Notes under the pieces: model-generated
The model's database searches: none
What the model was told of the DNA's origin: nothing
Seen by the model: the letters and a program-made list of their open reading frames with translations, nothing else
Assembly (NCBI RefSeq): GCF_036365525.1
Contig: NC_090374.1
Location: 15,107,168 to 15,171,167, forward strand
DNA: 64,000 nt
Reading direction: 5' to 3'
Source: Heterodontus francisci
Lineage: Eukaryota
In this document: piece by piece, positions 313 to 53,674 of the stretch
How the letters are laid out: every line of letters begins with the position of its first letter
Position numbering within the stretch: position 1 is the first letter of the stretch
Program-made: the position numbers and the translations under genes

Positions 313-692
313 GGGGGAACGGTAGCATAGTGGTTATGTTACTGGCCTAGTACTCCAGAGGCCTGGACTAATACTCCGGAGACATGAGTTTAAATCCCAC
401 CACAGCATCTGGTGGAATTTAAAATTCAATTAATAAATCTGGAATAAAATGCTAGTCTCAGTAATAATGATCATGAAATTAGTGGATTGTTGTAAAAGCC
501 CATCCTGTTCACTGATGCATTTCAGAGGAGGAAATCTGCCATCCTTACCTGGTCTGGCCTACATGTGATCCATAGCAATATGGTTGACTCTTAACTGCCT
601 TCTGAAATGGCTTAGCAAGCCATACCGTTGTCAGTGTCAATAAAGGCTGGCTTTGCCAGTGATGCTCACATCCCAAGAACAAATACAAAAAG
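313..692 (+). mobile_element. tRNA-headed SINE (family X; head/body and tail shared with LINE X at 38520-42150)
   Basis: A-box-like TAGCATAGTGG and B-box-like GAGTTTAAATCC; body GAGGAAATCTGCCATCCTTACCTGGTCTGGCCTACATGTGA; tail CAATAAAGGCTGGCTTTGCCAGTGATGCTCACATCCC plus A-rich end. Confidence 0.8.
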
Positions 693-739
693 GCACTAAA
701 TAGCTTGACACAAGAGTGATGACAAGGACGGTTAAGGGT

Positions 740-1070
740 TTACTATTGACAGGCTCAATGGAAGTAAAGAATTTGTTTCCTGTCATTGAGGTATCCAGAC
801 CAAGAGGTTGTAAATGTAAAAAGTCACGAATAGGAAATTTGGGAGAAACCTCTTGACCCAGAGAGTGTTTAGAGTGTGGAACTTGCTAAAACAAGTAGAT
901 GTTGAGGTGAATAGCAGAGTTGCTAAGGGGAAGCTAGATAATCACATGAGAAAGAAGGAATAGAAGGATATGTTAGTAGGGTGAGATGCAGTATGGTGGG
1001 AGGAGGCTCATGTGGAGCATTAACACCCCAGCATGGACCAGTTGGGCCGAATGGCCTGGCTCTGTGCCGC
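740..1070 (+). mobile_element. degraded CR1 LINE 3' fragment
   Basis: ACCCAGAGAGTG..GTGTGGAAC and GGGCCGAATGGCCTG motifs match the 3' ends of the CR1 copies elsewhere in the window. Confidence 0.55.
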
Positions 1071-1369
1071 AGACTCTGCCTCGCATCACAGAGCCAAACT
1101 TGTGTTCATTCAAGAAAAGGAGATAAAAGGGGCACCTGGGCTCTAGAATGCTGCATAAACGCTCCCCTGTGCTGCCTCAAAACTGTAGCTGAGGTTGAGT
1201 TGGCAGCAACTGAACTACATGCAGTCTGCTACTGCCAGGTCCAGTTTGTGCTGGGGGATTGGGACTGGTGCAGGAGAGACAGTGTGAGGTGAGGATTTAG
1301 TTGTCAGCATTGTTGTTGTACGGAACTGCCAATAGTTTCAAACTATTTACACTTTGTCACTTAAATTTA

Positions 1370-1680
1370 GGGCAGCGCAGTGGTTAGCACCGCAGCCTCA
1401 CAGCTCCAGGGACCCGGGTTCAATTCTGGGTACTTACTGTGCGGAGTTTGCAAATTCTCCCGGTGACCGTGTGGGTTTTCGCCGGGTGCTCCGGTTTCCT
1501 CCCACAGCCAAAGACTTGCAGGTGATAGGTAAATTGGCCGTTGTAAATTGCCCCTAGTGTAGGGAGGTGGTAGGGAATTATGGGATTACTGTAGGATTAG
1601 TATAAATGGGTGGTTGTTGGTTGGCATAGACTTGGTGGGCCGAAGGGCCTGTTTCAGTGCTGTATCTCTAAATAAATAAA
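1370..1680 (+). mobile_element. V-SINE (HE1-like), tRNA-derived
   Basis: tRNA-like head (CAGTGGTTAGCAC...GGTTCAATTC); V-domain GGAGTTTGCA...GGGTGCTCCGGTTTCCTCCCACA; CR1-like tail GGGCCGAAGGGCCTGTTTCAGTGCTG plus (TAAA)n; siblings at 23722 and 39863. Confidence 0.85.
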
Positions 1681-1786
1681 TTGATTCACCTACAAATTAA
1701 TAAAAGATATTTTAGAATTCTCGTGTGTGGTTTCTTGTGGCTTGTTTCAGCCTTGGCATCTTTTTCTGGAGATCTTAAAGAAGGAA

Positions 1787-1975
1787 TAAACTTGCATTTC
1801 TATAGCACCTTTCACGACGTCAGGATGTCTCAAAGCACTTTACAGCCAATGAAGTAGTTTTGATGTGTCGCCAGTGCTGTAAAGTCGGAAGCGCATCAGT
1901 CAATTTGTGCACAGCAAGCTCCCACAAACTGCAGTGATCATAACGAGATAATCTGTGTTTTTTTTTCATGATGGT
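1787..1975 (-). mobile_element. Deu-domain SINE (SacSINE1-like) 3' fragment
   Basis: Matches the 3' half of the 30170-30515 copy; L2-type tail GAAAGGTGCTATAGAAATGCAAG on the - strand. Confidence 0.6.
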
Positions 1976-1989
1976 GGTGAAAAGTCAGA

Positions 1990-3300
1990 GATTCATGGCA
2001 CAGAAGGAGGCCATTTGGCCCACTGAGTTCACGCCGGCTCTCTGTCCAACTATCCAGCCAGTCCCATTCCCATAACCCCGTAACCCTGCACGTTTATTTC
2101 CCTCAAGTGCTCATCCAATTTCCTTTTGGAAGCATTCATTGTCTCCGCTTCCGCATCTTCGTAGGCAGTGAGTTCGAGGTCATTTCCACTCGCTGAGTTA
2201 AGAAAGCTCTTCCTCACATCCCCTCGGCATCTCTATCCCAAAAACCTAAATCTGTGTCCCCCTAGTCCTTGTACCATCAGCTAATGAGAAGAACATTTCT
2301 TTGTCAACCTTCTCTAAACCTGCCATAATCTGGTACACCTCTATCAAATCTTCCTGCAATCTCCTTTGCTCCAAGGAGAACAACCCCAGCTTCTCCAACA
2401 TCTGGTCTCGATCTCTCAGTGCCTCACCGAGTGGTGTATTTAACACCGCCCCACATTGAGGGAACTAACTTTTCCTGCTCTCCAAGATTTGAACACTCCG
2501 CCCCCATCCTACCTGCAACATCCCACTGCCCCAGCATACTCTCACTATTAAATGATACCCATTGGTTAACTGCATTCCCCAATACCAGTGCTACATCTAA
2601 AATTTAACTAGCCTCCTTTAAATGTCACAAAACAAAGTCCCAGGAACTTGACATGTGAAATGAACAAGAGGAGGGGACAGAGGGTTTTGGAGGTGGAGGG
2701 GGGGGGGGGGTGGGTGCAATTCCAGAGAGTCTATCAGTGGAGGATGTGCTATTAATAGTAGGGTGAAGGGAGGTTGGGGGGGAAATTCACAAAAGGACGG
2801 AGTCAGAGATGGAGCATAGGAAGAGGAGGAGGCCATTCAGCCCCTCAAGACTGTTCCGCCATTCAATGAGATCATGGCTGATCTTTCTCCAAACCCCAAC
2901 AACCCACCTTGGCTCCGTATTCTTTCATACTGTTGTCTAGCAAAAAATTCATCGATCTCCGATTTGAAATTGTTAGTTGAGCTAACATCTACGGTATCAT
3001 TCTGGGAGAGAGTTCCACACGTCTGCCACCCTTTATGTGAAGAAGTGTTTCCTAACTTCTCTCCTGAATGACCTGGCTCTGATTGCTTGCCCCAGACTCC
3101 CGCACCAGTGGAAAATGTTTCTCTCTCTCTATCCTATCAATTCCTTTCAAAATCCTTCCATCAAATCAACCCTTAACCTTCTACATTCCAGTGAATGCAG
3201 CCTAGTTTATATAATCGCTCTCATAATCTAACCTTAGAGACCTGGTAACATTCTGCTGAAAATCAGCTGGACTCCTTCCAAAGCCAAATATCCTCTCAAA
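1990..3300 (-). mobile_element. two degraded CR1 3' fragments (1990-2400 and 2815-3300)
   Basis: ORF 2246-2446 LGLFSLEQRRLQEDLIEVYQIM...TRTRG is the CR1 ORF2 C-terminal motif. Confidence 0.7.
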
Positions 3301-3739
3301 GATGCGTTGCTATGGGTGAGACAACAAGACTACAGGGGGATTTGAAGATGGAAAGGGATAATCTTTTTTAGGTCTAACCTTGGTGGGGATGAACCCGGAT
3401 CCAGTCTTAGGTCAGTGAGGGCAGGGGGAAGGGGAAAGTGGGACTTAGTGCGGGACATGGAGAGGCTCTGACGGTCTTGCATGAATTAGAGACTGTAGAG
3501 GGTGGAGGGAGCAAGGGGTGATGCTGGAGAAATCAGGACGCGAGGCGACACAATGGTGGCTCAGGGTTTCAGCAGCTGAGAGCGGGACAGAGAGAAGGGG
3601 GTTGGGGGGGGGGTGCGGGGGTTCGATCTCATGGAGATGGAAAAGGAGGTGTTGGTGTTGGAAAGGATGTGTGGTTTGAACCTGAGCGGTTTACTTAGTT
3701 ACCAGTGTAACATTGACACATTGTGTCGGTTGTAAATCT

Positions 3740-7544: not shown

Positions 7545-8324
7545 CTCCCTCCCCACTTCAAAAAACAACTGATACATTAAAATGTAAAATGGTACATGTA
7601 CATTGTTCGGGATAGAAATGCATTACTGTACTAATGTGCCTCCTGGCTTGCCATTGTCATGTGAGCTGTGCCATGAGGCACTCACTGCAGGCAACCATAA
7701 CAAGTTCAATTCAGTAAAGACACAGTACAAGCAAGACTGTGAGTTTGTAACATGGTGTCAGAGTGGAGCTGAGATTGAGTGTTGAAGAGTTGTATAGAAG
7801 CACAGCTACTAAAACAGGAACACAGGAATGTTCAGAGCTGCTGAAAGCTGCTAAAAGCCATGGGAAGCCACAAAAAGAAGCATTAAAAGCACTGGGTAAG
7901 ACACAATGGCTGCAAATCTTCCTCTCACGCCGCCAGTCGAAATGAAAGGTGATATGAAGCAGAACTGGCAGTTTTTCCAATCACAATGGCAAAATTATGA
8001 AATTGCAATGGATATAATTTGAAAACCAGAGCAGCTACGAGTAGCTACACTTTTATCACTGTTGGGGAGAGACTGTAAATAAATGTATTCTAACGTAAAT
8101 CTCTCCAAAGAACAAACAAAACAGACAGCAGAAATTTTGAAAGACTTGAAGGCCAGCTTTGAACCCCAAGTGAATGTAACTTATGAACAGTTTGATATTA
8201 GGGCCCAAGGTGAAAAACAGTCCATTGATCAATATGTGACTGCATTAACACAGCTCGCAGACTCCTGTGAATTTGCGCAACTAAAAGATGATCTAATTAG
8301 GGGTTATATTAGGCATAAGACCGA

Positions 8325-9195
8325 GCATTTGACCGAGTATGGCATCAAGGAGCCCTAGCAAAACTGGAGTCAATGGGAATCAGAGGGAAAACTCTGCTCT
8401 AATATAATAAAAGCAAAATACTGCGGATGCTGGAAATCTGAAACAAAAACAAGAAATGCTAGAATCACTCAGCAGGTCTGGCAGCATCTGTGGAAAGAGA
8501 AGCAGAGTTAACGTTTCGGGTCAGTGACCCTTCTTCGGAAAACTCTGTTCGTTGGAGTCATACCTGGCACAAAGGAAGATGGCTGTGGTTATTGGAGGTC
8601 AACCATCTGAGCTCCAGGACATCACTGCAGGAGTTCCTCAGGGTAGTGTCCTAGGCCCAACCATCTTCAGCTACTTCATCAATGACCTTCCTTCAATCAT
8701 AAGGTCAGAAGTGCACATTGTTCAGGACCATTTGCGACTCCTCAGATACTGAAGCAATCCTTTTCGAAATGCAGCAAGACCTGGACAATATCTGGGCTTG
8801 GGCTGATAAGTGGCAAGTAACATTTATGCCACACAAGTGCCAGGCAATGACCATCTCCAACAAGAGAGAATCTAACCATCTCCTTTGACATTCAGTGGCA
8901 TTACCCATCGCTGAATCCCCAACTATCAACATCCTAGGGGCTACCATTGAGCAGAAACTGAACTGGAGTAGCCATATAAATACTGTAGCTACAACAGCAG
9001 GTCAGAGGCTAGAAATCCTGAGGCGAGTAACTCACCTCCTGACTCCCCAAAGCCTCTCCACCATCTACAAGGCACAAGTCAGGAGTGTGATGGAATACTC
9101 TCCACTTGCCTGGATGGGTGCAGCTCCAACAACACTCAAGAAGCTTGACACCATGCAGGACAAAGCAGCCCGCTCGATTGGCACCCCATCCACAC
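8325..9195 (+). mobile_element. RT fragment of LINE family X
   Basis: GVPQGSVLGPTIFS; QKLNWSSHINTVA..LSTIYKAQVRSVMEYSP, closely similar to 38520-42150. Confidence 0.85.
8400..8536 (-). mobile_element. Penelope-like pseudo-LTR fragment with 14-bp TSD
   Basis: Reverse complement of the 9870-9962 segment; flanked by GGAAAACTCTG(C/T)TC at 8386-8399 and 8537-8550. Confidence 0.75.
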
Positions 9196-23410: not shown

Positions 23411-23809
23411 CTGTACTAATGTGCTTCCTGGCTTGCCGTAGTCATGTGACCTCTACCATGAGGCACTCACTGCAGGCAGCCATCGCAAGTTCAGTTCAAT
23501 AAAGACACAGTACAAGCAAGACTGTTCTCCTGTGAGCTTGGAACATACATAATTTCCCAGAATACAATAACAGTTCCTGAAATCTAACAGTTTGGTTTGC
23601 ATGCTTGTTGTTACTGTAATCACAACTAACACATATGTAACCAATATTTCCAAAGTAATTTACATGTTAAAAAGATTCCTTTTCCTTTACACAAGTATAT
23701 CTTCAACAAAAATATCATCATTGGGCAGCACAGTGGCGCAGTGGCTAGCATCACAGCTCCAGCAACCCAGGTTCAATTCTGGGTACTGCTTGTGTGGAGT
23801 TTGCAAGTT

Positions 23810-31805: not shown

Positions 31806-32807
31806 GGTTGAACCTATATTCATTGGAGTTTAGAAGATTGAGAGGCAATCTTACTGAAATGTACAAGATTCTGCGAGGGCTTGATAGGGTAGATGCTGAG
31901 AGGATGTTTCCCTTCGTGGGGGGATTTATAACTAGGGGTTTCAAATTCAGGGGTCTCTGATTTAAGACAGAGATGAGGAGGAATTTCCTCTCTCAGAGGG
32001 TCATTAATCTTTGGAATTCTCTTTCCAGACAGCAGTGGAGGCTGGGCCACTGAATATATTCAAGGCCGAGTTAGACAGATTTTTGATTTACAAGGGAGTC
32101 AAGGGTTATGGGGACAGACAGGAAAGTGGAGTTAAGGCCGCAATCAGATCAGCCATGATTTTATTAAAGGATGGAGCCATCTCAAGAGGCCATGGCCTCC
32201 TCATGCTCCTATTTCTTATGCTCAATTAGAGCTTTTGCTCAAGTCTCTGGAGTGGGATTTGAATCCACAATTTTCCCGACTCAGAACCAAGAATGCTACC
32301 CACTGAGCCACCGCTCATACCAGAATCAGACCACCTGGTGAGTGCAGTGTGGTTTTAAGAGGAAATATGCCTTTGGACTTAAGATTTTCAGAGCTCCCCA
32401 CCACTGGGGGATTTCTTCACCTCATGTCTGCTTCTCTGTGATTAATCAATGACTCCATTATTGTTTTATAATGTGACTATCACTAAGGTAGAAGGCAAAC
32501 CAGACAGACCTTGGTCTTTTCTCGTCTGGTGATTCCTATGTTCTTGAAACTGGTATTTAAGAATAAGTAATAAGAGAGAAACAGGGTTAACATTTCAGAA
32601 AATCAGAACAGCTCACCCACATGTGGCTGAATTCTACTGAACCCCAAGTGCCAGGAAAGGAGACAGGGGGAGGGGTGGGGGGTGGGGGGTGGTGGTCAGT
32701 TAAAATAGTGGGGAGCCACGCTAGGACGGCTCCTCATTACTGTCCCGCCACCGGGAATGTTTCCCAGCCGTGAGCTGCAAAGCAGATCGGCTGCTTAGTC
32801 CACGGGG

Positions 32808-33835
32808 TAACATAGGAAATAGGAGCAGGAGTAGGCCATTCAGCCCATCGAGCCTGCTCCACCATTCAAACAGATCATGGATGATCATCTATCACTTTGC
32901 CATGCTATCCCCATATCCCTTTAGTATCATTAGCATCCAGATATCTATCAATTTCTGTCTTGAACACGCTCAATGATTGAGCCTACACAGCCCTCTGAAG
33001 TAGAAAATTCCACAGATTCATCACCCTCTGAGTGAAGAAATTCCTCCTCATCTCAGTCTTAAATGACTAGCCCCTTATTCTGAGACGATGTCCCCTAGTT
33101 ATACACTTACCAACTGAGGAAACATCCTCTGTACATCCACCCTGCCACACCCTGTAAGAATTTTGTAGGTTTCAATGAGATCACCTCCCATTCTTCGAAA
33201 CTCTAGAGAACACAGGCCCAGTTTCCTCAATCTCTCCTCATAAGAGAGTCCTGCTATCCCAAGGATTGGTTTGGTGAACCTCCATTGCACTCCCTCTGTG
33301 ACAAGTATATCTTCCTGAGGAGACCAAAACTGTACACAATATTCCAGGTACGGTTTCACCAAGGCTTTATACAATTGCAGTAAGACATCTTTACTCCTGT
33401 CCTCAAATCCGCTTACAATGAAGGCCAACGTACACCTTCCTACTTGCTTGCTGCACCTGCAGTGATTCATGAACAAGGACACCCAGGTCTGTTTGGACAT
33501 CAACACTTCCCAACCTCTCACCATTTAAGAAATACTCTGTCTTTCTGTTTTTTTCTACCAAGTGGATAACTTCACACTTATTCACATTATATTCCAACGG
33601 TCATGTTCTTGCCCATTCCCTTAGCCAGTCCAAATCCCCTTGAAGCCTCCTCTACACAAATTGCGTTCCCTTAAAGGAATGTATATTTGTTGTAGACCAC
33701 GTAATACTTCTTTAAATATCTGTCTACCGTCAAATCTTTTAGTGTATTTTCCCAATCCAACATAGCCAATTTGCCTCTTATACCTTTGTAGTTTCCTTTG
33801 TTCAGATTTAAGACCCTAGTTTCAGAATGAACAGC
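32808..33835 (-). mobile_element. degraded CR1 RT/3' fragment
   Basis: ORF 33099-33524 LYKALVKPYLEYCVQFWSP..GDLIETYKI. Confidence 0.85.
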
Positions 33836-34869: not shown

Positions 34870-35788
34870 TAGATGACACAAAACTGGGTGGGAGGGTAAG
34901 TTGTGAGGAGGATGCAGAAAGGCTTCAGGGTGATTTGGACAAGTTGAGTGAGTGGGCAAGTGCATGGCAGATGCAGTACAATGTGGATAAATGTGAGGTT
35001 ATCCACTTTGGTAGCAAAAACAGGAAGGCAGATTATTATCTGAACGGCTATAAATGGAGAGAAGGGAATAGGCAGCGGGACCTGGGTGTTCTCGTACACC
35101 AGTCGCTGAAGGCAAGCTTGCAGGTGCAACAGGTAGTAAAAACGGCAAATGGTATGTTGGCTTTCATAGCAAGAGGATTCGAGTACAGGAGCAGGGATGT
35201 CTTGCTGCAATTATACAGGGCCTTGGTGAGGCCACACCTGGAATATTGTGTGCAGTTTTGGTCTCCTTATCTGAGGAAGGATGTTCTTGCTATAGAGGGA
35301 GTGCAGCGAAGGTTTACCAGACTGATTGCTGGGATGGCGGGACTGACGTATGAGGAGAGATTGAGTCGGTGAGGATTATATTCGCTAGAGTTCAGAAGGG
35401 TGAGGGGGGAATCTCATAGAAACTTGTAAAATTCTAACAGGACTTGACAGGGTAGATGCAGGAAGGATGTTCCCAAGGTGGGGGAGTCCAGAATCAGGGA
35501 TCATAGTCTAAGGATTTGGGGTAAACCTTTCAGGACTGAGATGAGGAGAAATTTCTTCACCCAGAGAGTGGTGAATCTGTGGAATTCACTACCACAGAAA
35601 GCAGGTGAGGCCAAAACATTGTATGTTTTCAAGAAGGAGTTAGATATAGCTCGTGGGTCTAAAGGGATCAAAGAATATGGGGCAAAAGCAGGAACAGGTG
35701 ACTGAGTTGGATGATCAGCCATGATCATATTGAATGGCGGGGCAGGCCTGAAGGGCCGAATGGCCTACTCCTGCTCCTATTTTCTATG
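34870..35788 (+). mobile_element. 5'-truncated CR1
   Basis: DDTKLGG..LVRPHLEYCVQFWSP; FFTQRVVNLWNSLP; CR1 3' tail. Confidence 0.92.
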
Positions 35789-35872
35789 TTGGGCCTAGTT
35801 GGCCAATTAGGAGGAACGGTGGGCCTGGGGCGGCCAATTAGGAGGAACAGTGGGCCTGGGGCGGCCAACAAG

Positions 35873-36152
35873 CAGGACAAGGGCAGCAAATGCATGGGAA
35901 CACCACCACCTGCAAGTTCCCCTCCATGTCACACACCATCCTGACTTGGAACTATATCGCTGTTCCTTCACTGTCGCTGGGTCAAAATCCTGGAACTCCC
36001 TTCCTAACAGCACTGTGGGTGTACCTACCCCACATGGACTGCAGCGGTTCAAGAAGACAGCTCACCACCACCTTCTCAAGGGCAATTAGGAGTGAGCCAT
36101 AAATACTGGCCTGGCCAGCGACGCCCACATCCCATGAATGAATTAAAACAAA
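35873..36152 (+). mobile_element. 3' tail fragment of LINE family X
   Basis: FTVAGSKSWNSLP..HHHLLKGN* followed by GCCAGCGACGCCCACATCCCATGAATGAA. Confidence 0.85.
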
Positions 36153-37234: not shown

Positions 37235-38519
37235 GTATGTATTTGTGACTGGGTCTCTGGAATTAACCGACCACTCATACAGCCTCGGAGACGGGCAGAG
37301 TAAACAAGGTATAGGGAGGGGATGTTCTGTTAGATTAGCTCAGTGACGCGCGTTTCGATCAAGAAAAAAAATTGAGTGTAGAAAGTTGGGAACATTCCCC
37401 TCTTTTCCCTTTTCTCTAATTCTGTTTGCTGTTCCTCTGTGATATCTTTCAGTTCTCAGGACTTTTTAAAGGGTGAAATTGTGAAGACGGGTTTCATAAA
37501 CTTGGCTTGTGTTCCCTCCAGTTTAAGGGTTGATTGAGGTTTTTGAATTGTTAAACGGGGGGGGGGGGGGGGGGGGGGTTTCTATGGGGGTGGATACCCA
37601 TCTGGTAGATCTTGGTGTCATATATGACCCCGAGATGAGTTTCCAAACACATTTTAGCCCCATCACTAAGACCACACATTTCCAGCTCTGTAACATCGCC
37701 GGACTTTGCCCCATCTCAGCACATCTCCTGCTGAACTCCTCATTCATGTCTTTGTTACCTCTAGACTTGTCTATTCCTGGCTGGTCTCCCACATTCTACC
37801 CCCTGTTGTCTGTGTCTTATCGCAGCAAGTCCCTTTCCCCTATCACCCCTGTGCTCGCTGACCTACACTGGGTCCCGTTCAAGCAGCGCCTTGATTTTTA
37901 CATTCTCAACCTTGTTTTCAAATCCCTCATGACCTCGCCCCTCCCATATCTCTGTCATCGCCTCCAGCCCCAAAACCCTCCCAGATATCTGTGCTAAAAT
38001 TAGAGGTAGGTCAGGCAGGAGTGAAATCAGGAAGCACTTTTTATACAAGAGGTCGTGGAAATCTGGAACTTACTCCTTCAAAAGGCTGAATGTTGGGGGA
38101 GGGGGGTGTCAATTGAAGCCTGCAAGACTGAGATTGATAGGTTCTGTTCAGGTAAGGTTATCGACGAATAATGTAGTCTCACTTGTATTATCTGCATAGG
38201 CAGTGTCTAACCTGCTGAGCGTTTGCTGTTTTTGTGTGAGATTGTGGAGAATTGGGGATTTTGGGTTAAAACTAACTATTTAATAAGGAAAAAGGCAGAG
38301 GAATCATTTCTGAGGAGCTAAGAGGTGGAGAGGCGTATAAAGAAATAGGAGCGAGAATAGGCCATGTGGCTCCTCTAGCTTGCTCCACCATTCAGTATTG
38401 ACCTGTACATGAGCTCCAGTTTCCCATCCTGTCCCCATATTCTCTTAGAGTCCAAAAATTTATCGATCTCAGCTTTGAATATACTCAATGACCAAGCATT
38501 CACAGGATTCCAAAGATTC

Positions 38520-41500
38520 TTTTTTTAAATTCATTCATGGGATGTAGGTGTCGCTGGCTAGGCCAGCATTTATTGCCCATCCCTAATTGCCCTTGAGAAG
38601 GTGGTGGTGAGCTGCCTTCTTGAACCGCTGAAGTCCATGTGGGGTAGGTACACCCACAGTGCTGTTAGGAAGGGAGTTCCAGCATTTTGACCCAGCGACA
38701 GTGAAGCAACGGCCGATATAGTTCCAAGTCAGGATGGTGTGTGACTTGGAGGGGAACTTGCAGGTGGTGGTATTCCCATGTATTTGTTGCCCTTGTCCTT
38801 CTAGTTGGTAGAGGTCGCAGGTTTGGAAGGTGCTGTCTAAGGAGCCTTGGTGCATTGCTGCAGTGCATCTTGTAGATGGTACACACTGCTGCCACTGTGC
38901 GTCAGTGGTGGAGGGAGTGAATGTTTGTAGATGGGGTGCCAATCAAGCGGGCTGCTTTCTCCTGGATGGTGTCGAGCTTCTTGAATGTTGTCGGAGCTGC
39001 ACCCATCCAGGTAATTGGAGAGTATTCCATCACACTCCTGACTTGTGCCTTCTAGATGGTGGACAGGCTTTGGGGAGTCAGGAGGTGAGTTACTCGTCTC
39101 AGGACGTCTAGCCTCTGACCTGCTCTTGTAGCCACGGTATTTATATGGCTACTCCAATTCAGTTTCTGGTCAATGGTAGCCCCGAGGATGTTGATAGTGG
39201 GGGATTCAGTAATGGTAATGCCGTTGAATGTCAAGGGGAGATGGTTAGATTCTCTCTTGTTGGAGATGGTCATTACCTGGCACTTGTGTGGCGTGAATGT
39301 TACTTGCCACTTATCAGCCCAAGCCTGGATATTGTCCAGGTCTTGCTGCATTTCTACATGGACTGCTTCAGTATCTGAGGAGTCAGGAATGGTGTTGAAC
39401 ATTGTGCAATCATCAGCGAACATCCCATTTCTGACCTCATGATTGAAGGAAGGTCATTGATGAAGCAGCTGAAGATGGTTGGGCCGAGGACACTACCCTG
39501 AGGAACTCCTGCAGTGATGTCCTGGATCTCAGATGATTGACCTCCAACAACTACAACCATCTTCCTTTGCGATAGGTATGACTCCAGCCAGCGGAGGGTT
39601 TTCCTCTGATTCCCATTGACCTCAGTTTTACTAGGGCTCCTTGATGCCATACTCGGTCAAATGCTGTCTTGATGTCAAGGGCAGTCACTCTCACCTCACC
39701 TCTTGAGTTCAGCTCTTTTGTCCATGTTCGAACCAAGGCTGTAATGAGGTCAGGAGCTGAGTGGCCCTGGCGGAACCCAAACTGAGTGTCACTGAGCAGG
39801 TTATTGCGAAGTAAGTGCCGCTTGATGGCACTGTTGATGACACCTTCCATCACTTTACTGATGGGCAGCACAGTGGCGCAGTGGTTAGCACTGCAGCCTC
39901 ACAGCTCCAGCAACCCGGGTTCAATTCTGGGTACTGCCTGTGTGGAGTTTGCAAGTTCTCCCTGTGTTTGCGTGGGTTTCCTTCGGGTGCTCCGGTTTCC
40001 TCCCACATGCCAAAGACTTGCAGGTTGATAGGTAAATTGGCCATTATAAATTGCCCCTAGTATAGGTAGGTGATAGGGAAATATAGGGACAGGTGGGGAT
40101 GTGGTAGGAATATGGAATTAGTGTAGGATTAGTATAAATGGGTGGTTGATGGTCGGCGCAGACTCAGTGGGCCGAAGGGCCTGTTTCAGTGCTGTATCTC
40201 TAAATAAATAAAAAAAAAATAAGTTGGCTGATGGGGCAGTAATTGGCCGGGTTGGACTTGTCCTGCTTTTTGTGCACAGGACCTACCTGGGCAATTTTCC
40301 ACATTGCAGGGTAGATGCCAGTGTTGTAGCTGTACTGGAACAGCTTGGCTAGGGGCGCGGCAAGTTCTGGAGCACAGGTCTTCAGTACAATTGTCACGGC
40401 CCATAGCCTTTGCAGTGTCCAGTTACTTCAGTTGTTTCTTGATATCACGCAGAGTGAATCGAATTGGCTGAAGTCTGGCATCTGTGATACTGGGGACTTC
40501 AGGAGGAGGCCAAGATAGATCATCAATTCGGCACTTCTGGCTGAAGATTGTTGCAAATGCTTCAGACTTATCTTTCGCACTGATGTGCTGGGCTCCCCCA
40601 TCATTTGAGGATGGGAATATTTGTGGAGCCACCTCCTCCAGTTAGTTGTTTAATTGTCCACCACCATTCACGGCTGGATGTGGCAGGACTGCAGAGCTTA
40701 GATCTGATCCGTTGGTTATGGGATTGCTTAGCTCTGTCTATCGCATGCTGCTTACGCAGTTTGGCACGCAGATAGTCCTGTGTTGTAGCTTCACCAGGTT
40801 GACACCTCATTTTGAGGTATGCCTGGTGCTCCTGGCATGCCCTCCTGCACTCTTCATTAAACCAAGGTTGGTCTCCTGGCTTGATGGTAATGGTAGAGAG
40901 GGGGATATGTCGGGCCATGAGGTTACAGATTGTGGATGAGTACAATTCTGCTGCTGCTGATGGCCCACAGCGCCTCATGGATGCCCAGTTTTCCATTGCT
41001 AGATCTGTTCGAAATCTATCCCATTTAGCACGGTGATAGTGCCACACAACACGATGGAGGGTATCCTCAATGTGAAGGCGGGACTTCGTCTCCACAAGGA
41101 CTGTGCGGTGGTCACTCCTACCAATACTGTCATGGACAGTTGCATCTGCAGCAGGCAGATTGGTGAGGACGAGGTCAAGTATGTTTTCCCCTCTTGTTGG
41201 TTCCCCCACCACCTGCTGCAGACCCAGTCTAGCAGATATGTCCTTTAGGACTCGGCCAGCTCAGTCAGTAGTAGTGCTACCGAGCCACTCTTGGTGATGG
41301 ACATTGAAGTCCCCCACCCAGCGTACATTTTGTGCCCTTGCCACCCTCAGTGCTTCCTCCAAGTGCTGTTCAACATGGAGAAGTACTGACTGATCAGCTG
41401 AGGGAGGTAGGTGGTAATCAGCAGGAGGTTTCCTTGTCCATGTTTGACCTGATGCCATGAGACTTCATGGGGTCCAGAGTCGATGTTGAGGACACCCAGG

Positions 41501-42150
41501 GCAACTCCCTCCTTACTGTATACCACTGTGCCACCACCTCTGGTGGGTCTATCCTGCTGGTGGGACAGGACATACCCGGGGGTGGTGATGGCAGTGTCTG
41601 AGACATTGTCTGTAAGGTATGATTCCGTGAGTATGACTATGTCAGGCTGTTGCTTGACTAGTCTGTGTCACAGCTCTCCCAACTTTGGCACAAGCCCCCA
41701 GATGTTAGTCAGGAGGACTTTGCAGGGTCGACATGGCTGGGTTTGCCGTTGTTGTTTCCGGTGCCTAGGTCGATGCCGGGTGTCCGTCCGGTTTCATTCC
41801 TTTTTATTGACTTGGTAGCAGTTAGATACAACTGAGTGGCTTGCTAGGCCATTTTAGAGGACATGTAAGAGTCAACCACATTGCTGTGGGTCTGGAGTCA
41901 CATGTAGGCCAGACCAGGTAAGGACAGCAGATTTCCTTCCCTAAAGGACATTAGTGAACCAGATGGGTTTTTACAACAATCGACAATGGTTTCATGGCCA
42001 TCATTAGACTAGCTTTTTAATTCCAGATTTATTAATTGAATTCAAATTCCACCTTCTGCTGTGGTGGGATTTGAACCCATGTTCCCAGGGCAATACCTTG
42101 GTTCTCTGGGTTACTAGTCCAGTGACAATACCACTGCGCCATTGCCTCCT
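38520..42150 (-). mobile_element. LINE X: tRNA-headed, single-ORF (APE+RT) CR1-group LINE, full length but frameshifted
   Basis: A box TGGCGCAGTGG (42141-42131); B box GGTTCAAATCC (42077-42067); APE KVLLTNIWGL..PDIVILTES..GDFN..ILDLVLT..SDH; RT ALDIKTAFD, GVPQGSVLGP, FADD; tail (ATGA)n plus A-run; host CR1 fragment continues on both sides. Confidence 0.85.
39863..40219 (+). mobile_element. full-length V-SINE (HE1-like) inserted in LINE X
   Basis: GGGCAGCACAGTGGCGCAGTGG head, V-domain, CR1-like tail, TAAA/A end. Confidence 0.9.
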
Positions 42151-43832
42151 CTTTGAGTGAAGAAATATCTCCTCATCTCAGTCCTAAATAGTCGACCCCT
42201 GATTTCAAGACTGTGTGACCCCTAGTCCTAGAATTTCCAGCCAAGGAAAACAGCCTCTCAGGATCCAACCTGTTAAGTCCTCCAAGAATTTTACGTACTT
42301 CAGTGGTTTTGAACAATAAAGAGTCAGGGTGTGAAGCTACCCGGCCGGTTTCATACCAATCTATGAAGAGGTTGATTCAAAGCCCTCAGGCCCTTCCTCA
42401 TTGCAATGTTAGAAGTGTTTGCTCATGGCTTCATCAATGGAATGTATAGTATGAACTGGAGAATGTCCCTAAATTGTTTGCGTACTGCGTCTTGTTGAGA
42501 ACCCCTGATTTTATCTCATTCTTGCTGAAACCCTAACTGAGCCTCACCTTCTGTCTGTCTCCAAGACTATTTCTGCCTCTGAAGCTCAGTCCTCTCTATT
42601 CCCCTCCCATTCACATCTGAAACCTTTAACCATGCTTTATCTACTTTGAGGCATGATTTCCCCAGTATCCTGGTGTTTGGGCACTGAGTCAGATCTGCCA
42701 CCAACTCCACTGAACATTCAACCTGTCCAAGACTCTACCATGGAAAGGATGTGAAGGATGAGAAGAGGGTACAGAGAATATTTACTAGAATGGTACCAGG
42801 GAAGAGGGAGTTCAGTTCCACGGAGAGACTAGGATTATTCTTCTTACAGCAGAGAGGTTTAAGGTGAGATTTAATAGAAGGGTCCAAAATTATGAAGGGT
42901 TTTGAGAGGGTAAATAGGGTAAAGCTGTTTCCACTGGCAGATGGATCAGTAACTGGAGAACACAGATATTTGCCAAAAAAGGCTGTGGGTGGAGTTGTTG
43001 GGGGGGGGGGGGGGGTGGGGGAGATGAGGTAATTGGATATATAATTAAAAAGGAAAAGATTTGCAAGGTTATATTGAAAGAGTGGAATAAATTGAATAGT
43101 TCAGGGAGGTGGTACAGGGATGATGGGCTGAATGGCCTCTTTCTGTAGGACTTATTGTGCTACCTTCTGTGTCTCCCATTGCATCCCGTTCAATCATCAT
43201 CCTTTTCCTTAGACTTTCAAAGTACTTAATTGGCTGGAAAGTACTTTGGGACATCCTGAGGTGGTGAAAGGTGCTATATAAATGCAAGTCTTCCTTTCCT
43301 TAGTGACCCTGTTCCCCCAACATGCCAAATTCAAAGTCCTCGAGCTTGTTCACTGATCCCTCCATCACCTCCCTGGCTCTGCCAACTATTCCAACCTTCC
43401 ACCAGTCTGCACCCCTTTGATTGCCCTACCTCCACTGACCTCCTACTAACCCCATCCACCCTCCCTTTGTTTCACTAACAAAGGGGGGGAACTTCAGCCG
43501 CCTCAGCCCGACCGAATCCCCTCCACCTCTGCTCAAAAGCCTTCCCAAACCTACCTTTTGGACCTAAGATTTTAACATCTCTGCAATTCTTCAGCTACTG
43601 CTCAGTATCTGTGGTTCTGCTGTGAAACACTTTGGGAAATTCCACAGTATTGACACAGTAAAACTGCAGATTAATGAGTTCCCTTTCCATCCTTGTAATT
43701 CCCACATGAATGTTGTTAAACTGCACAGTTTATTTCTTCCTTTATATAGCATTTCCACCCTGTTTTATGGGATTACATCTGGTTGGTGTGTGTACACGAA
43801 ATGTATACTATTGAATAGTCTAAGCCTATAGT

Positions 43833-46032: not shown

Positions 46033-47045
46033 AGTGTCTAGAGTTCAGAAGAATGACCTCATAGAAACAGATATGATTCAGAGAGGGTTTGATAGGATAG
46101 ATGCTGGGAAGCTGTTTCCCCTGATCAGTCTTGGAATAAGGCATCTGCCATTTAGGACTGAGATGCAGAGAAATTTCTTCGCTTAGAGGATTATGAATCA
46201 TTGGAATTCTCTATCCCAGAGAGAAGTGGATGCTCCCACATTGAGTATGTTCAACACTGCGATTGATAGATTTCTGGACTCTTAGGGGATCCAGGATAGG
46301 GCGATAAATCAAAGAGGTGCAGCTGAGGTTGACATGATTGTACTGAATGGTGGAGCAGACTCGAAGGGCCGAATGGCCAACTCCTTCTCCTGTTTCTTAT
46401 GTTCTTGTGTATAATAAGCAGTGATAGAGGTGGGGAAGCCCCACCATAACTCATGAAAAAATTTGGCCATTACTTTATGGTGACTGCATTATTTAAATTC
46501 CGTGGGATTCCAGAAATGTGTTCAGAGATTTGGGGTTTTTATTCTGTAATTTCACCCTCTTGAAAACCACAAACTAGAGGTCAGGTCACATGCCAGGATT
46601 TGATAATAAATGAAATGCGTTGAGTGTTGTGTAGGCTGTGTATGTATCACATGACTGCAACACAACCCCCTACTTCCCATTGCTCGTTCTCACAATGTGA
46701 GGAATACAGAAATGTGTTGTGGCTTAACCACAATGAAGGAAATCTCCAGGATTAAGTTCCAGTCTTATTCTTGCCTTATGATTCATCAGAGTGAGAATCA
46801 TGCAGCTCAGAAGGAGAACATTCAACCCATCATGCCAATCATAGAATAGTTACCACACAGGAGGAGGCCATTCAGCCTGGTGTGTCTATGCTTGCCCTCT
46901 GCAAGAGCAAGTCACCTAGTCCCACTCCCTTGCCACTTCCCAGTAGCGCTGCAGAGTTTTTTCTCTTCATTAACTTATCCAATTCTCTATTGAATAACAC
47001 GATTAAATCTGCCTCCACCACACTCTCAGGCAGTGCAACCCAGAT

Positions 47046-47530: not shown

Positions 47531-49505
47531 TCCTCCCGATATCACATGGAGATCTGCTGCATGCTGCAGTTGGTTCTTTTGCCAATCACCTTAAATTGGT
47601 GTCCTCTGGTTTATGGTTTTCAAGAGGGTGAAACTGCAGAATAAAAACCCTGAAACTCGGCGAACATTTCTGGAATCACACGGAATTTAAATAATTCAGT
47701 CACTGTAAAGTAATGGCCTATTTTTTCATGTGTTATAGAATACAGTGGGGTTTCCCCACTGCTTTCATTGTTCATTGTACACAGGAGCTTAAGAAACAGA
47801 AGAAGTAGTCGACCATTCGGCCCTTCGAGCCTGCTCATCCATTCAATATGATCATGGTTGATCCTCTACCTCATCTGCGCCTCCTTGGCTTATCCCCATA
47901 TCCCTGGATTCCCATACAGCCAGAAATCTATCGATCTCAGTGTTGAATATACTCAATGTTAGAGCATCCACATCTCTTTGGCTTGAGAATTCCAAAGATT
48001 CACAATACTTAATGTGAAGAAATTTCTCCTCATCTCAGTCCTAAATAAGACTGTGACTCTGTGTTCTAGAGTCCCCAGTCAGGGGAACCAGCTTCCCAGC
48101 CTCTACCCTGTCAAGCCCTCTCTAAATGGTATATGACTCTCGGGAATATAGGCCTAGACTATTCAATAATATACATTTTGTGTATGTACATCAGCCAGAT
48201 GTAATCCCTTAGAACAGGGTGGAAATAAACTGTGCAGTTTTACAACATTTAACAAAATTCTTGTGGGAATCACAAGGATGGAAAAGGAACTCATTAATTT
48301 GAAGTTTTACTGTGTTAATACTGTGGAATGTCCCAAAGTGTTTCACAGCAGAACCACAGATACTGAGCAGTAGCCGACGAATTTGTGCAGATGAAAGAGA
48401 AATAAAAAGGTCTTGCATTTATATAGTGCCTTTCACAACCACTGGATTTCCAAAATCGCAATTAGTGCTGAGGTTACTTTACATCCATCTGAAAGAGCAG
48501 ACAGGGCCTTGATTTAACGTCCCATCCGAAAGATGGCACCTCCAACACTGCAGCATTCCCTCAGTACTGCACTGCAGCATCAGCCTTGATTTTTGTGCTC
48601 AAGTCCTGGAGCGAGACTTAGACCCACAGATTTCTGACTCAGAGGTGAGAGCCCGACCAACTGAACCACAGTTGAGACTATGAGCAAATGGCATCTGAAA
48701 ATTTTGCAATTGTGCCCAGTACACCCAATTCCTAGTCATTTAAATATATCAAAAAAAGCAGTGGTCCCAGTACTGACCCCTGGGAAACCCCACTGTCTAC
48801 CACCCTCCAGTCCGAAAAACAACCATTCACCACTATTCTCTGTTTTCTGTCTTTTAACAAACTTCATACCATGCTGCCACTGTCCTTTTTATCCCACGGG
48901 CTTCAATTTTGCTGACAAGCCTATTATGTGGCACTTTATTAAATGCCTTTTGGAAGTCTATGTACTCCACATCAACCACATTACCCTCATCAACCTTCTG
49001 TTACCTGATCAAAAAACTCAAGCAAGTTAGTTAAACACAATTTCCTTTAACAAATCCATGCTGGCTTTCCTTAACTAATCCATACTTGTCCAACTGACTG
49101 TTAATATTATCTTAGATTACCGTTTCTAAAAGCTTTCCCACCACTGAGGTTAAATTATCTTGGCCTGAAGTTGCTGGGTTTATCCCTATAAACAAGGGTG
49201 TAACATTTGCAATTCTTCAGTTCTTTGGAACCACCCCTCTATCTGAGCAAGATTGGAAGATTGTGGCCAGTTCCTCCGCAATTTCCTCCCTTAATTCCCT
49301 CAGTAAGCTAGGATGCATCCTTTCCAGTACCTGCTCTTCCACAGTTTTCAGCCCATCCAGTATCTCACAACATCCTATTTCGCTATGACTTAGGCAACAT
49401 CTTCTTCCTTGGTAAAGACAGATGCAAAGTACATAGGAACATACGAAATAGGATCAGGAGTAGGCCATCCGGCCTATGTACTTGCCTGTGTACGTTGCCA
49501 ATCTT

Positions 49506-53090: not shown

Positions 53091-53327
53091 GTTTGCCAAA
53101 CCTCTGGGTAGACAGTGATTCACTCATGAGGGACATTGGGAGGGATGGATAGAGTCACAGGTCAGGCTGTGATGCTTCCTTCTGTCCAAAGATGAATAGC
53201 TTGCCAGCACTCGTCGTTGGACTTGTACATGGTGAGCACCAACCTTGGACAGAAGCTGGAGCCTGGCCAGAGCTCATGGAGTTGCACTGGGGCATGAGTC
53301 ACATGTGCAGTACAATACAGAATCTCT

Positions 53328-53674
53328 TAGGCTAATGCTCTGGGGACGTGGGTTCGAATCCCACTATGGCAATTGGTGAAATTTGAATTCAATTAATGAA
53401 TCTGGAATTAAACACTAGTCTAATGATGAGCATGAAACTATTGTCGATTGTTGTAAAAACCCATCTGGTTCACTAATGTCCTTTAGGGAAGGAAATCTGC
53501 CGTTCTTACCTGGTCTGGTCTACATGTGACTCCAGACCCACAGCAATGTGGTTGACTCTTAAATGCCCTCTGAAATGGTCTAGCAAGCCACTCAGTTCAA
53601 GGGAAATTCGGGATGGGCAATAAATACTGTCCTAGCCAGTGACCCCCACATCCCACTAAACAAATAAAACAAAA
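53328..53674 (+). mobile_element. family X SINE, 5'-truncated (B box, body, LINE X tail)
   Basis: GGTTCGAATCC; body collinear with 42100-41830; at 53597/53598 it jumps to CAAGGGAAATTCGGGATGGGCAATAAA, the LINE X 3' end. Confidence 0.88.

Follow-up and report, generated by a model that had tools for sequence, protein, structure and literature searches.

Does a short non-coding retroelement (SINE) of a shark genome represent its partner LINE with only the gene removed, and if so, which of the two came first? The question was raised by a sequence-only reading of a 64,000-nt stretch of Heterodontus francisci DNA (GCF_036365525.1, contig NC_090374.1, positions 15,107,168 to 15,171,167, forward strand; here denoted the window), which proposed that a SINE at 53328-53674 is collinear with the 5' region of a LINE and then jumps to the last ~75 nt of the same LINE. 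The elements are here denoted SINE X and LINE X. That observation held, with small corrections to the coordinates. The reading further proposed that the SINE is either an internal-deletion derivative of a tRNA-headed LINE or was captured by the LINE as a promoter. As an either/or this interpretation is supported, although our data do not decide between the two. The layout offers a direct route by which SINEs and their unexplained middle parts could arise.

Layout of SINE X and LINE X

To examine the relation between the two elements, we aligned the window, which contains no N, with itself using blastn. Window 53333-53597 matched LINE X positions 51-316 at 90.6% identity over 266 nt (E 7e-102), and window 53597-53673 matched positions 3550-3626 at 81.8% (E 1.5e-15); over the first 316 nt of the LINE identity is 85-91%. 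A multiple alignment placed the switch at 53597/53598, right after ...GCAAGCCACTCAGTT, exactly as the sequence-only reading had described. The SINE does not start at 53328, however. A local alignment carried it through a more decayed head to LINE position 1, and an nhmmer profile search gave 53287-53597, indicating that the copy is full length and not 5'-truncated. LINE and SINE start within about 3 nt of each other. Profile searches detected only three head/body copies and four tails in the window.

The older SINE copy has the same layout. It follows the LINE to position 318 and keeps the GT that follows GTT in the LINE. Its junction, described in the sequence-only reading as shorter, reflects the absence of one unit of a 14-nt near-repeat (GGGCAAT[T/A]A...; GGGCAATTA...GGGCAATAA) and is not a different breakpoint class. 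Either the old copy lost a unit by slippage, or the repeat arose later in the LINE. The claim that the whole ORF is removed is nearly exact, as the single gap spans LINE positions 317-3550, that is, about 32 nt of leader plus the ORF except its last 10 nt and the stop codon.

LINE X is a 3,626-nt dead element with stops and frame shifts, 3.26 kb of which is its own. Its minus-strand reading-frame pieces hit Pfam RVT_1 in three ORF pieces (best E 1.9e-11) and, weakly, Exo_endo_phos_2 (E 3.6e-4). An intact 983-aa relative (P0018, 40% identity) carries endonuclease and reverse transcriptase (RT) in one ORF. P0018, P0158 and P0160, intact 983-aa single-ORF relatives, sit on ENA contigs of 3.6-3.8 kb, about the length of one element, and their relatives occur in brittle star, amphioxus and coral. 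With its domains and the 5'-truncated copies in the window, LINE X has the features of an APE-type non-LTR retrotransposon. The ORF has about 950 codons, and there is no room for an ORF1.

The ATG at 41734, the apparent start codon in the sequence-only reading, is private to this copy, since 98% or more of contig depth in the four sequencing runs described below reads another base there. The likely start codon of the family lies upstream, at LINE position 349. An in-frame TAA lies two codons upstream of it, and the arginine-rich peptide that follows resembles the N-terminus of P0018, although in this copy it is one base out of frame with the endonuclease. The LINE leader is therefore almost entirely the SINE head and body, with only about 31 nt separating the shared part from the likely start codon. 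At the other end, the 3' UTR is 63 nt and ends in A7.

The likeness of the head to tRNA is weak. The Rfam tRNA model scored 18.9 bits (threshold 29, E 0.32) with a 24-nt insert, there was no hit in the old copy, and ARAGORN found nothing; nevertheless GGGTTCAAATCCCA and GCAGTGGTA are visible, and box A-like and box B-like motifs are plain. To learn whether SINE X is a V-SINE of the HE1 type, we searched for a 12-nt core motif of the V domain as printed in the supplement of PMC6887750 (the human MER6 consensus printed there was compared by eye only). The motif occurs only at 39942, within the SINE nested in LINE X, and at 23794, and never in SINE X or the LINE X leader, so that identity was rejected. 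A 25-nt string of the body occurred in none of the papers searched.

Table. Features of SINE X, LINE X and associated repeats in the window.
Position	Strand	Feature	Remarks
53284-53597	+	SINE X copy, head and body	Matches LINE X positions 1-316; first ~45 nt decayed, box A damaged
53598-53674	+	SINE X copy, tail	Matches the last 77 nt of LINE X: last 10 nt of the ORF, stop codon and 3' UTR
320-631	+	Older SINE X copy, head and body	Matches LINE X positions 2-318 at about 77-79% identity
632-692	+	Older SINE X copy, tail	Only one unit of the 14-nt near-repeat
38520-42145	-	LINE X, full-length dead copy	Head, ~240-nt body, ~31-nt leader, broken endonuclease-RT ORF and tail; one insertion inside an older repeat
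41828-42145	-	LINE X 5' leader equal to the SINE head and body
42137-42057	-	tRNA-like part of the leader	Box A and box B motifs
42054		Head position	97-99% of contig depth in organisms B and D reads the other base, 77% in organism A reads the base of LINE X; marks a head subfamily specific to the window's lineage
41795-41797	-	Likely start codon of the family
38583-38585	-	Stop codon of the LINE ORF	Inside the part kept by the SINE
38520-38595	-	LINE X tail shared with the SINE	Hairpin CTGGC-CTA-GCCAG, kept in all four tails of the window (two LINE, two SINE)
38560-38595	-	14-nt near-repeat at the start of the LINE tail	Spans the stop codon
39864-40227	+	Nested 364-nt SINE of another family (V-domain type)	Antisense inside LINE X; tRNA head, A-rich end; flanked by an 8-nt duplication (CCCATCAG)
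23722-23809		Fragment of the same V-domain SINE	88.5% identity to the nested copy
35865-36152	+	5'-truncated LINE X copy	Last 289 nt, 92% identity; shows that the tail is continuous with the end of the ORF in the LINE family
8317-9194	+	5'-truncated LINE X fragment	RT region, 88-91% identity
61473-61867	-	Older LINE X fragment	81% identity
42146-42445 and 38220-38519		Older, abundant repeat hosting LINE X	...TTCTTCACTCAGAGGGTGATGAATCT...
31853-31998, 32816-33164, 35426-35568, 46126-46398, 47908-48047		Other copies of the older repeat	Copies about 68-80% alike

Recurrence of the junctions in other copies

The window holds a single full-length LINE X, hence we examined whether its structure is an accident of this locus. 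The flanks of LINE X are the two halves of the older repeat. Three uninterrupted copies of that repeat in the window show the empty site (...CACTCAGAGGGTGATGAATCT...), and so does a loose-end consensus in reads of run X17 described below (at 42154). LINE X, from head to A7, fills that one site with the loss of about 4-5 bases and with a single tail, indicating that head, ORF and tail arrived on one RNA.

To look beyond the window, Logan contigs of four sequencing runs were mapped to 38450-42200 at 80% likeness or more; all junction counts come from this one mapping. The runs are X1 and X17 from organism A (the window's own species), X5 from organism B and X8 from organism D. X1 may be the sample from which the window was assembled, and X17 is only guessed to be RNA, so we draw nothing about expression from it. 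SINE-type joints 38593-38597 -> 41828-41833 occurred in all four runs; for example, 38595->41830 was present in 38, 20, 19 and 14 contigs of X1, X5, X8 and X17, respectively, with close variants at 41828 and 41833. Three contigs of organism A (X1 record 8, X17 records 15 and 16) crossed the head-to-ORF junction at 41830 with at least 66 nt on each side, and they differ from the window copy at about 12-15% of letters, demonstrating that they come from other copies and that the headed LINE is a family trait and not a one-off chimera. In organisms B and D the mapping showed the LINE's 5' coding part (for example place 41781, in 80 and 77 contigs) and the SINE-type joints but no bridging contig, and the headed LINE is thus shown directly only for the window's own species. 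A second group of joints at 41856-41866 was not accepted as a deletion class, since the sequence between is marked as not known and the loose ends there are only the homologous sequence of more diverged subfamilies.

All four runs hold the LINE without the nested SINE (joint 39863->40228), indicating that the insert is not part of the LINE family. Contig depth over the nested SINE is millions in organism A but near zero in organisms B and D, so that this subfamily expanded only in the window's lineage. Protein relatives at 70-85% identity come from Heptranchias perlo, Heterodontus francisci and Rhincodon typus; the LINE family is therefore widespread among sharks. A 1573-aa H. francisci gene model named storkhead-box protein 1-like (P0021, XP_067909351.1) contains a stretch 76% identical to the LINE X protein (residues 119-193), where a LINE fragment was probably annotated as exon sequence. 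A 24-base pattern of the body found nothing in viral, metagenome or prokaryote genome collections, and a protein-based metagenome scan found no relative.

Direction of descent between LINE and SINE

We regard SINE X and LINE X as two size forms of one retrotransposon lineage. The most economical history, which we consider about as likely as not, is that a LINE already carrying the head lost positions 317-3550 in one internal deletion, either by a jump of the reverse transcriptase along its template or by a genomic deletion in a source copy. One deletion explains both borders of the SINE without any coincidence, as the shared 5' part is nearly the whole LINE leader and the shared 3' part begins 10 nt before the stop codon. 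In this view the short product kept the two things it needs, the 5' module with the internal promoter motifs and the 3' tail with its hairpin, and was then copied in trans, in far larger numbers. In stringent CR1/L2-type LINEs this tail is what the reverse transcriptase recognises, as established for eel UnaL2 (Kajikawa and Okada 2002, cited in PMC5786205). The 3,262-nt sense core of LINE X, without the nested SINE, has no run of four or more T, against 5.1 expected from shuffles (P 0.0035), whereas runs of A are as expected (15 against 16). This would fit read-through by RNA polymerase III but is not proof. Work on L1 and Alu shows that polymerase III transcripts can retrotranspose without ORF1 protein (PMC2666806), which would make a headed LINE without ORF1 coherent. 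What our analysis demonstrates is that both ends are collinear, that the LINE copy inserted as one piece, that the SINE-type junction recurs across copies and species and the head-to-ORF junction in other copies of the window's own species, and that the sense strand of the LINE lacks T runs; the direction from LINE to SINE, transcription of either form by polymerase III and recognition of the tail by the reverse transcriptase are inferred.

Capture of the SINE by the LINE is a less likely but open alternative. An older SINE would have existed first, and the enzyme, having run to the 5' end of a LINE RNA or to a truncated end just upstream of the ORF, would have switched to a SINE RNA at the end of its body, producing a head-body-ORF-tail chimera that became a source element. 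The SINE would then not derive from the LINE. Template switching onto small RNAs and 5' replacement in LINEs are documented for L1 (bioRxiv 10.1101/2025.02.02.635956), and a LINE with no ORF1 and so little leader of its own looks like a 5'-truncated element rescued by a foreign promoter. That the old SINE copy is the most diverged of the three head/body copies also speaks for capture. However, the switch would have to land exactly at the body/tail border, which needs a coincidence or a hot spot. Had a complete SINE RNA been copied, a SINE tail should lie between body and ORF, but the ~98-nt stretch from the body to the ATG at 41734 shows no likeness to the tail beyond chance (p 0.73 against shuffles; 77% of other LINE windows score as high). 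A further route, outside the either/or of the sequence-only reading and slightly less likely again, is that the body is the LINE's own ancient 5' UTR, that a headless derivative of 5' UTR plus 3' end gained a tRNA-like head by a template switch (the Okada-Hamada and Kojima model), and that the head later passed to the full LINE by a switch inside the homologous body. This model is documented for RTE and Vingi LINEs and for many SINEs such as Bov-tA, Mar-1 and AfroSINE (PMC5786205); homology across the body would make such a switch easy, and the shared borders are explained as well as by deletion. It needs three events where two suffice, and no headless full-length LINE X 5' end was seen, albeit with one full-length copy in the window. 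Relatives of the LINE carry a jockey label rather than RTE or Vingi, which is weak evidence.

The deletion and capture readings together cover most of the probability. The three head/body copies of the window fit an unrooted star, with 15 private sites for the LINE head, 23 for the young SINE and 39 for the old one, and thus say nothing about direction. The old SINE, the most diverged of the three (about 18% branch length), is at least as old as the oldest LINE fragment in the window, and old LINE copies are 5'-truncated, so that they do not show whether early LINEs carried the head. A one-off accident, namely a LINE that landed inside or next to a SINE copy or an assembly error, is very unlikely and close to refuted, as there is only one tail, the head-to-tail unit fills a single site and other, non-identical contigs cross the same junction.

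The origin of SINE middle parts is an open question, and the current model rests on RTE and Vingi LINEs, whose 5' UTR pieces turn up in SINEs (PMC5786205). If the LINE is the parent, SINE birth needs one deletion and no separate gain of a head; if the SINE is the parent, a LINE has replaced its promoter and ORF1 with a SINE module, which would fit the retrotransposition of polymerase III transcripts without ORF1 protein. Either way the family is very abundant in at least three shark species, and the question can be addressed with genome data that already exist. A more far-reaching possibility, which we hold only tentatively, is that sharks carry an autonomous, CR1-like LINE lineage that is itself a polymerase III-type unit, with a SINE head and body as its whole leader, no ORF1 and no T runs, which sheds its ORF, perhaps more than once, to make SINEs. 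The SINE body would then simply be the LINE's leader, and LINE and SINE would be interconvertible forms of one element, a living example of how SINE bodies arise outside the RTE and Vingi clades.

Comparison with known SINE and LINE pairs

The premise of the sequence-only reading that SINEs usually share only the 3' tail with their LINE is too strong. In Bov-tA/Bov-A with Bov-B, Mar-1, AfroSINE, Ped-1/2 and the SINEs listed by Kojima 2018 (PMC5786205), the SINE holds a piece of the partner LINE's 5' region as its middle part and the LINE's extreme 3' end as its tail, and an internal-deletion step is invoked. SINE X likewise matches its LINE in both parts. In those cases the tRNA head belongs to the SINE only and the LINEs are RTE or Vingi, the only donor clades found by Kojima, whereas LINE X itself starts with the head, the shared 5' part is nearly the whole leader, and the LINE's relatives are labelled jockey/CR1-like. 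For this last point Pfam gave only RVT_1 and Exo_endo_phos(_2), and the label rests on two relatives of P0018 named 'mobile element jockey' by a source, which is weak evidence for a CR1-type rather than an RTE-type element. Literature searches, which did not cover most subscription journals and so are not proof of novelty, found no description of a LINE with a tRNA-type head.

Among cartilaginous fish, HE1 with HER1 and SacSINE1 with L2-2_CM (PMC3747384; PMC5499810) are tRNA-headed SINEs of sharks that share a conserved 3' tail with a CR1/L2-type LINE. For these pairs only the tail is reported as shared, and SINE X may or may not be SacSINE1. In U6/L1 and other LINE-1 chimeras, and in L1 promoter co-option (bioRxiv 10.1101/2025.02.02.635956), a LINE RNA becomes joined at its 5' side to a small polymerase III RNA or gains a foreign promoter. 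Those are mostly single dead-end insertions, whereas here the joined form recurs in non-identical copies, in a family that is abundant across shark species.

The closest parallel in logic is RIME/ingi and NARTc/L1Tc of trypanosomes (PMC5786205), together with HAL1/L1, non-autonomous LINEs made by internal deletion. There the short element is the long one with its coding part deleted, and both share the same 5' terminus, which carries the internal promoter, and the same 3' end. SINE X is likewise collinear with LINE X at both termini, with a single internal gap and the same 5' terminus. The shared 5' module of the trypanosome elements is a polymerase II promoter and ribozyme, and HAL1 keeps ORF1, whereas the module shared by SINE X and LINE X is a tRNA-like head with box A and box B motifs that sits on the autonomous element itself.
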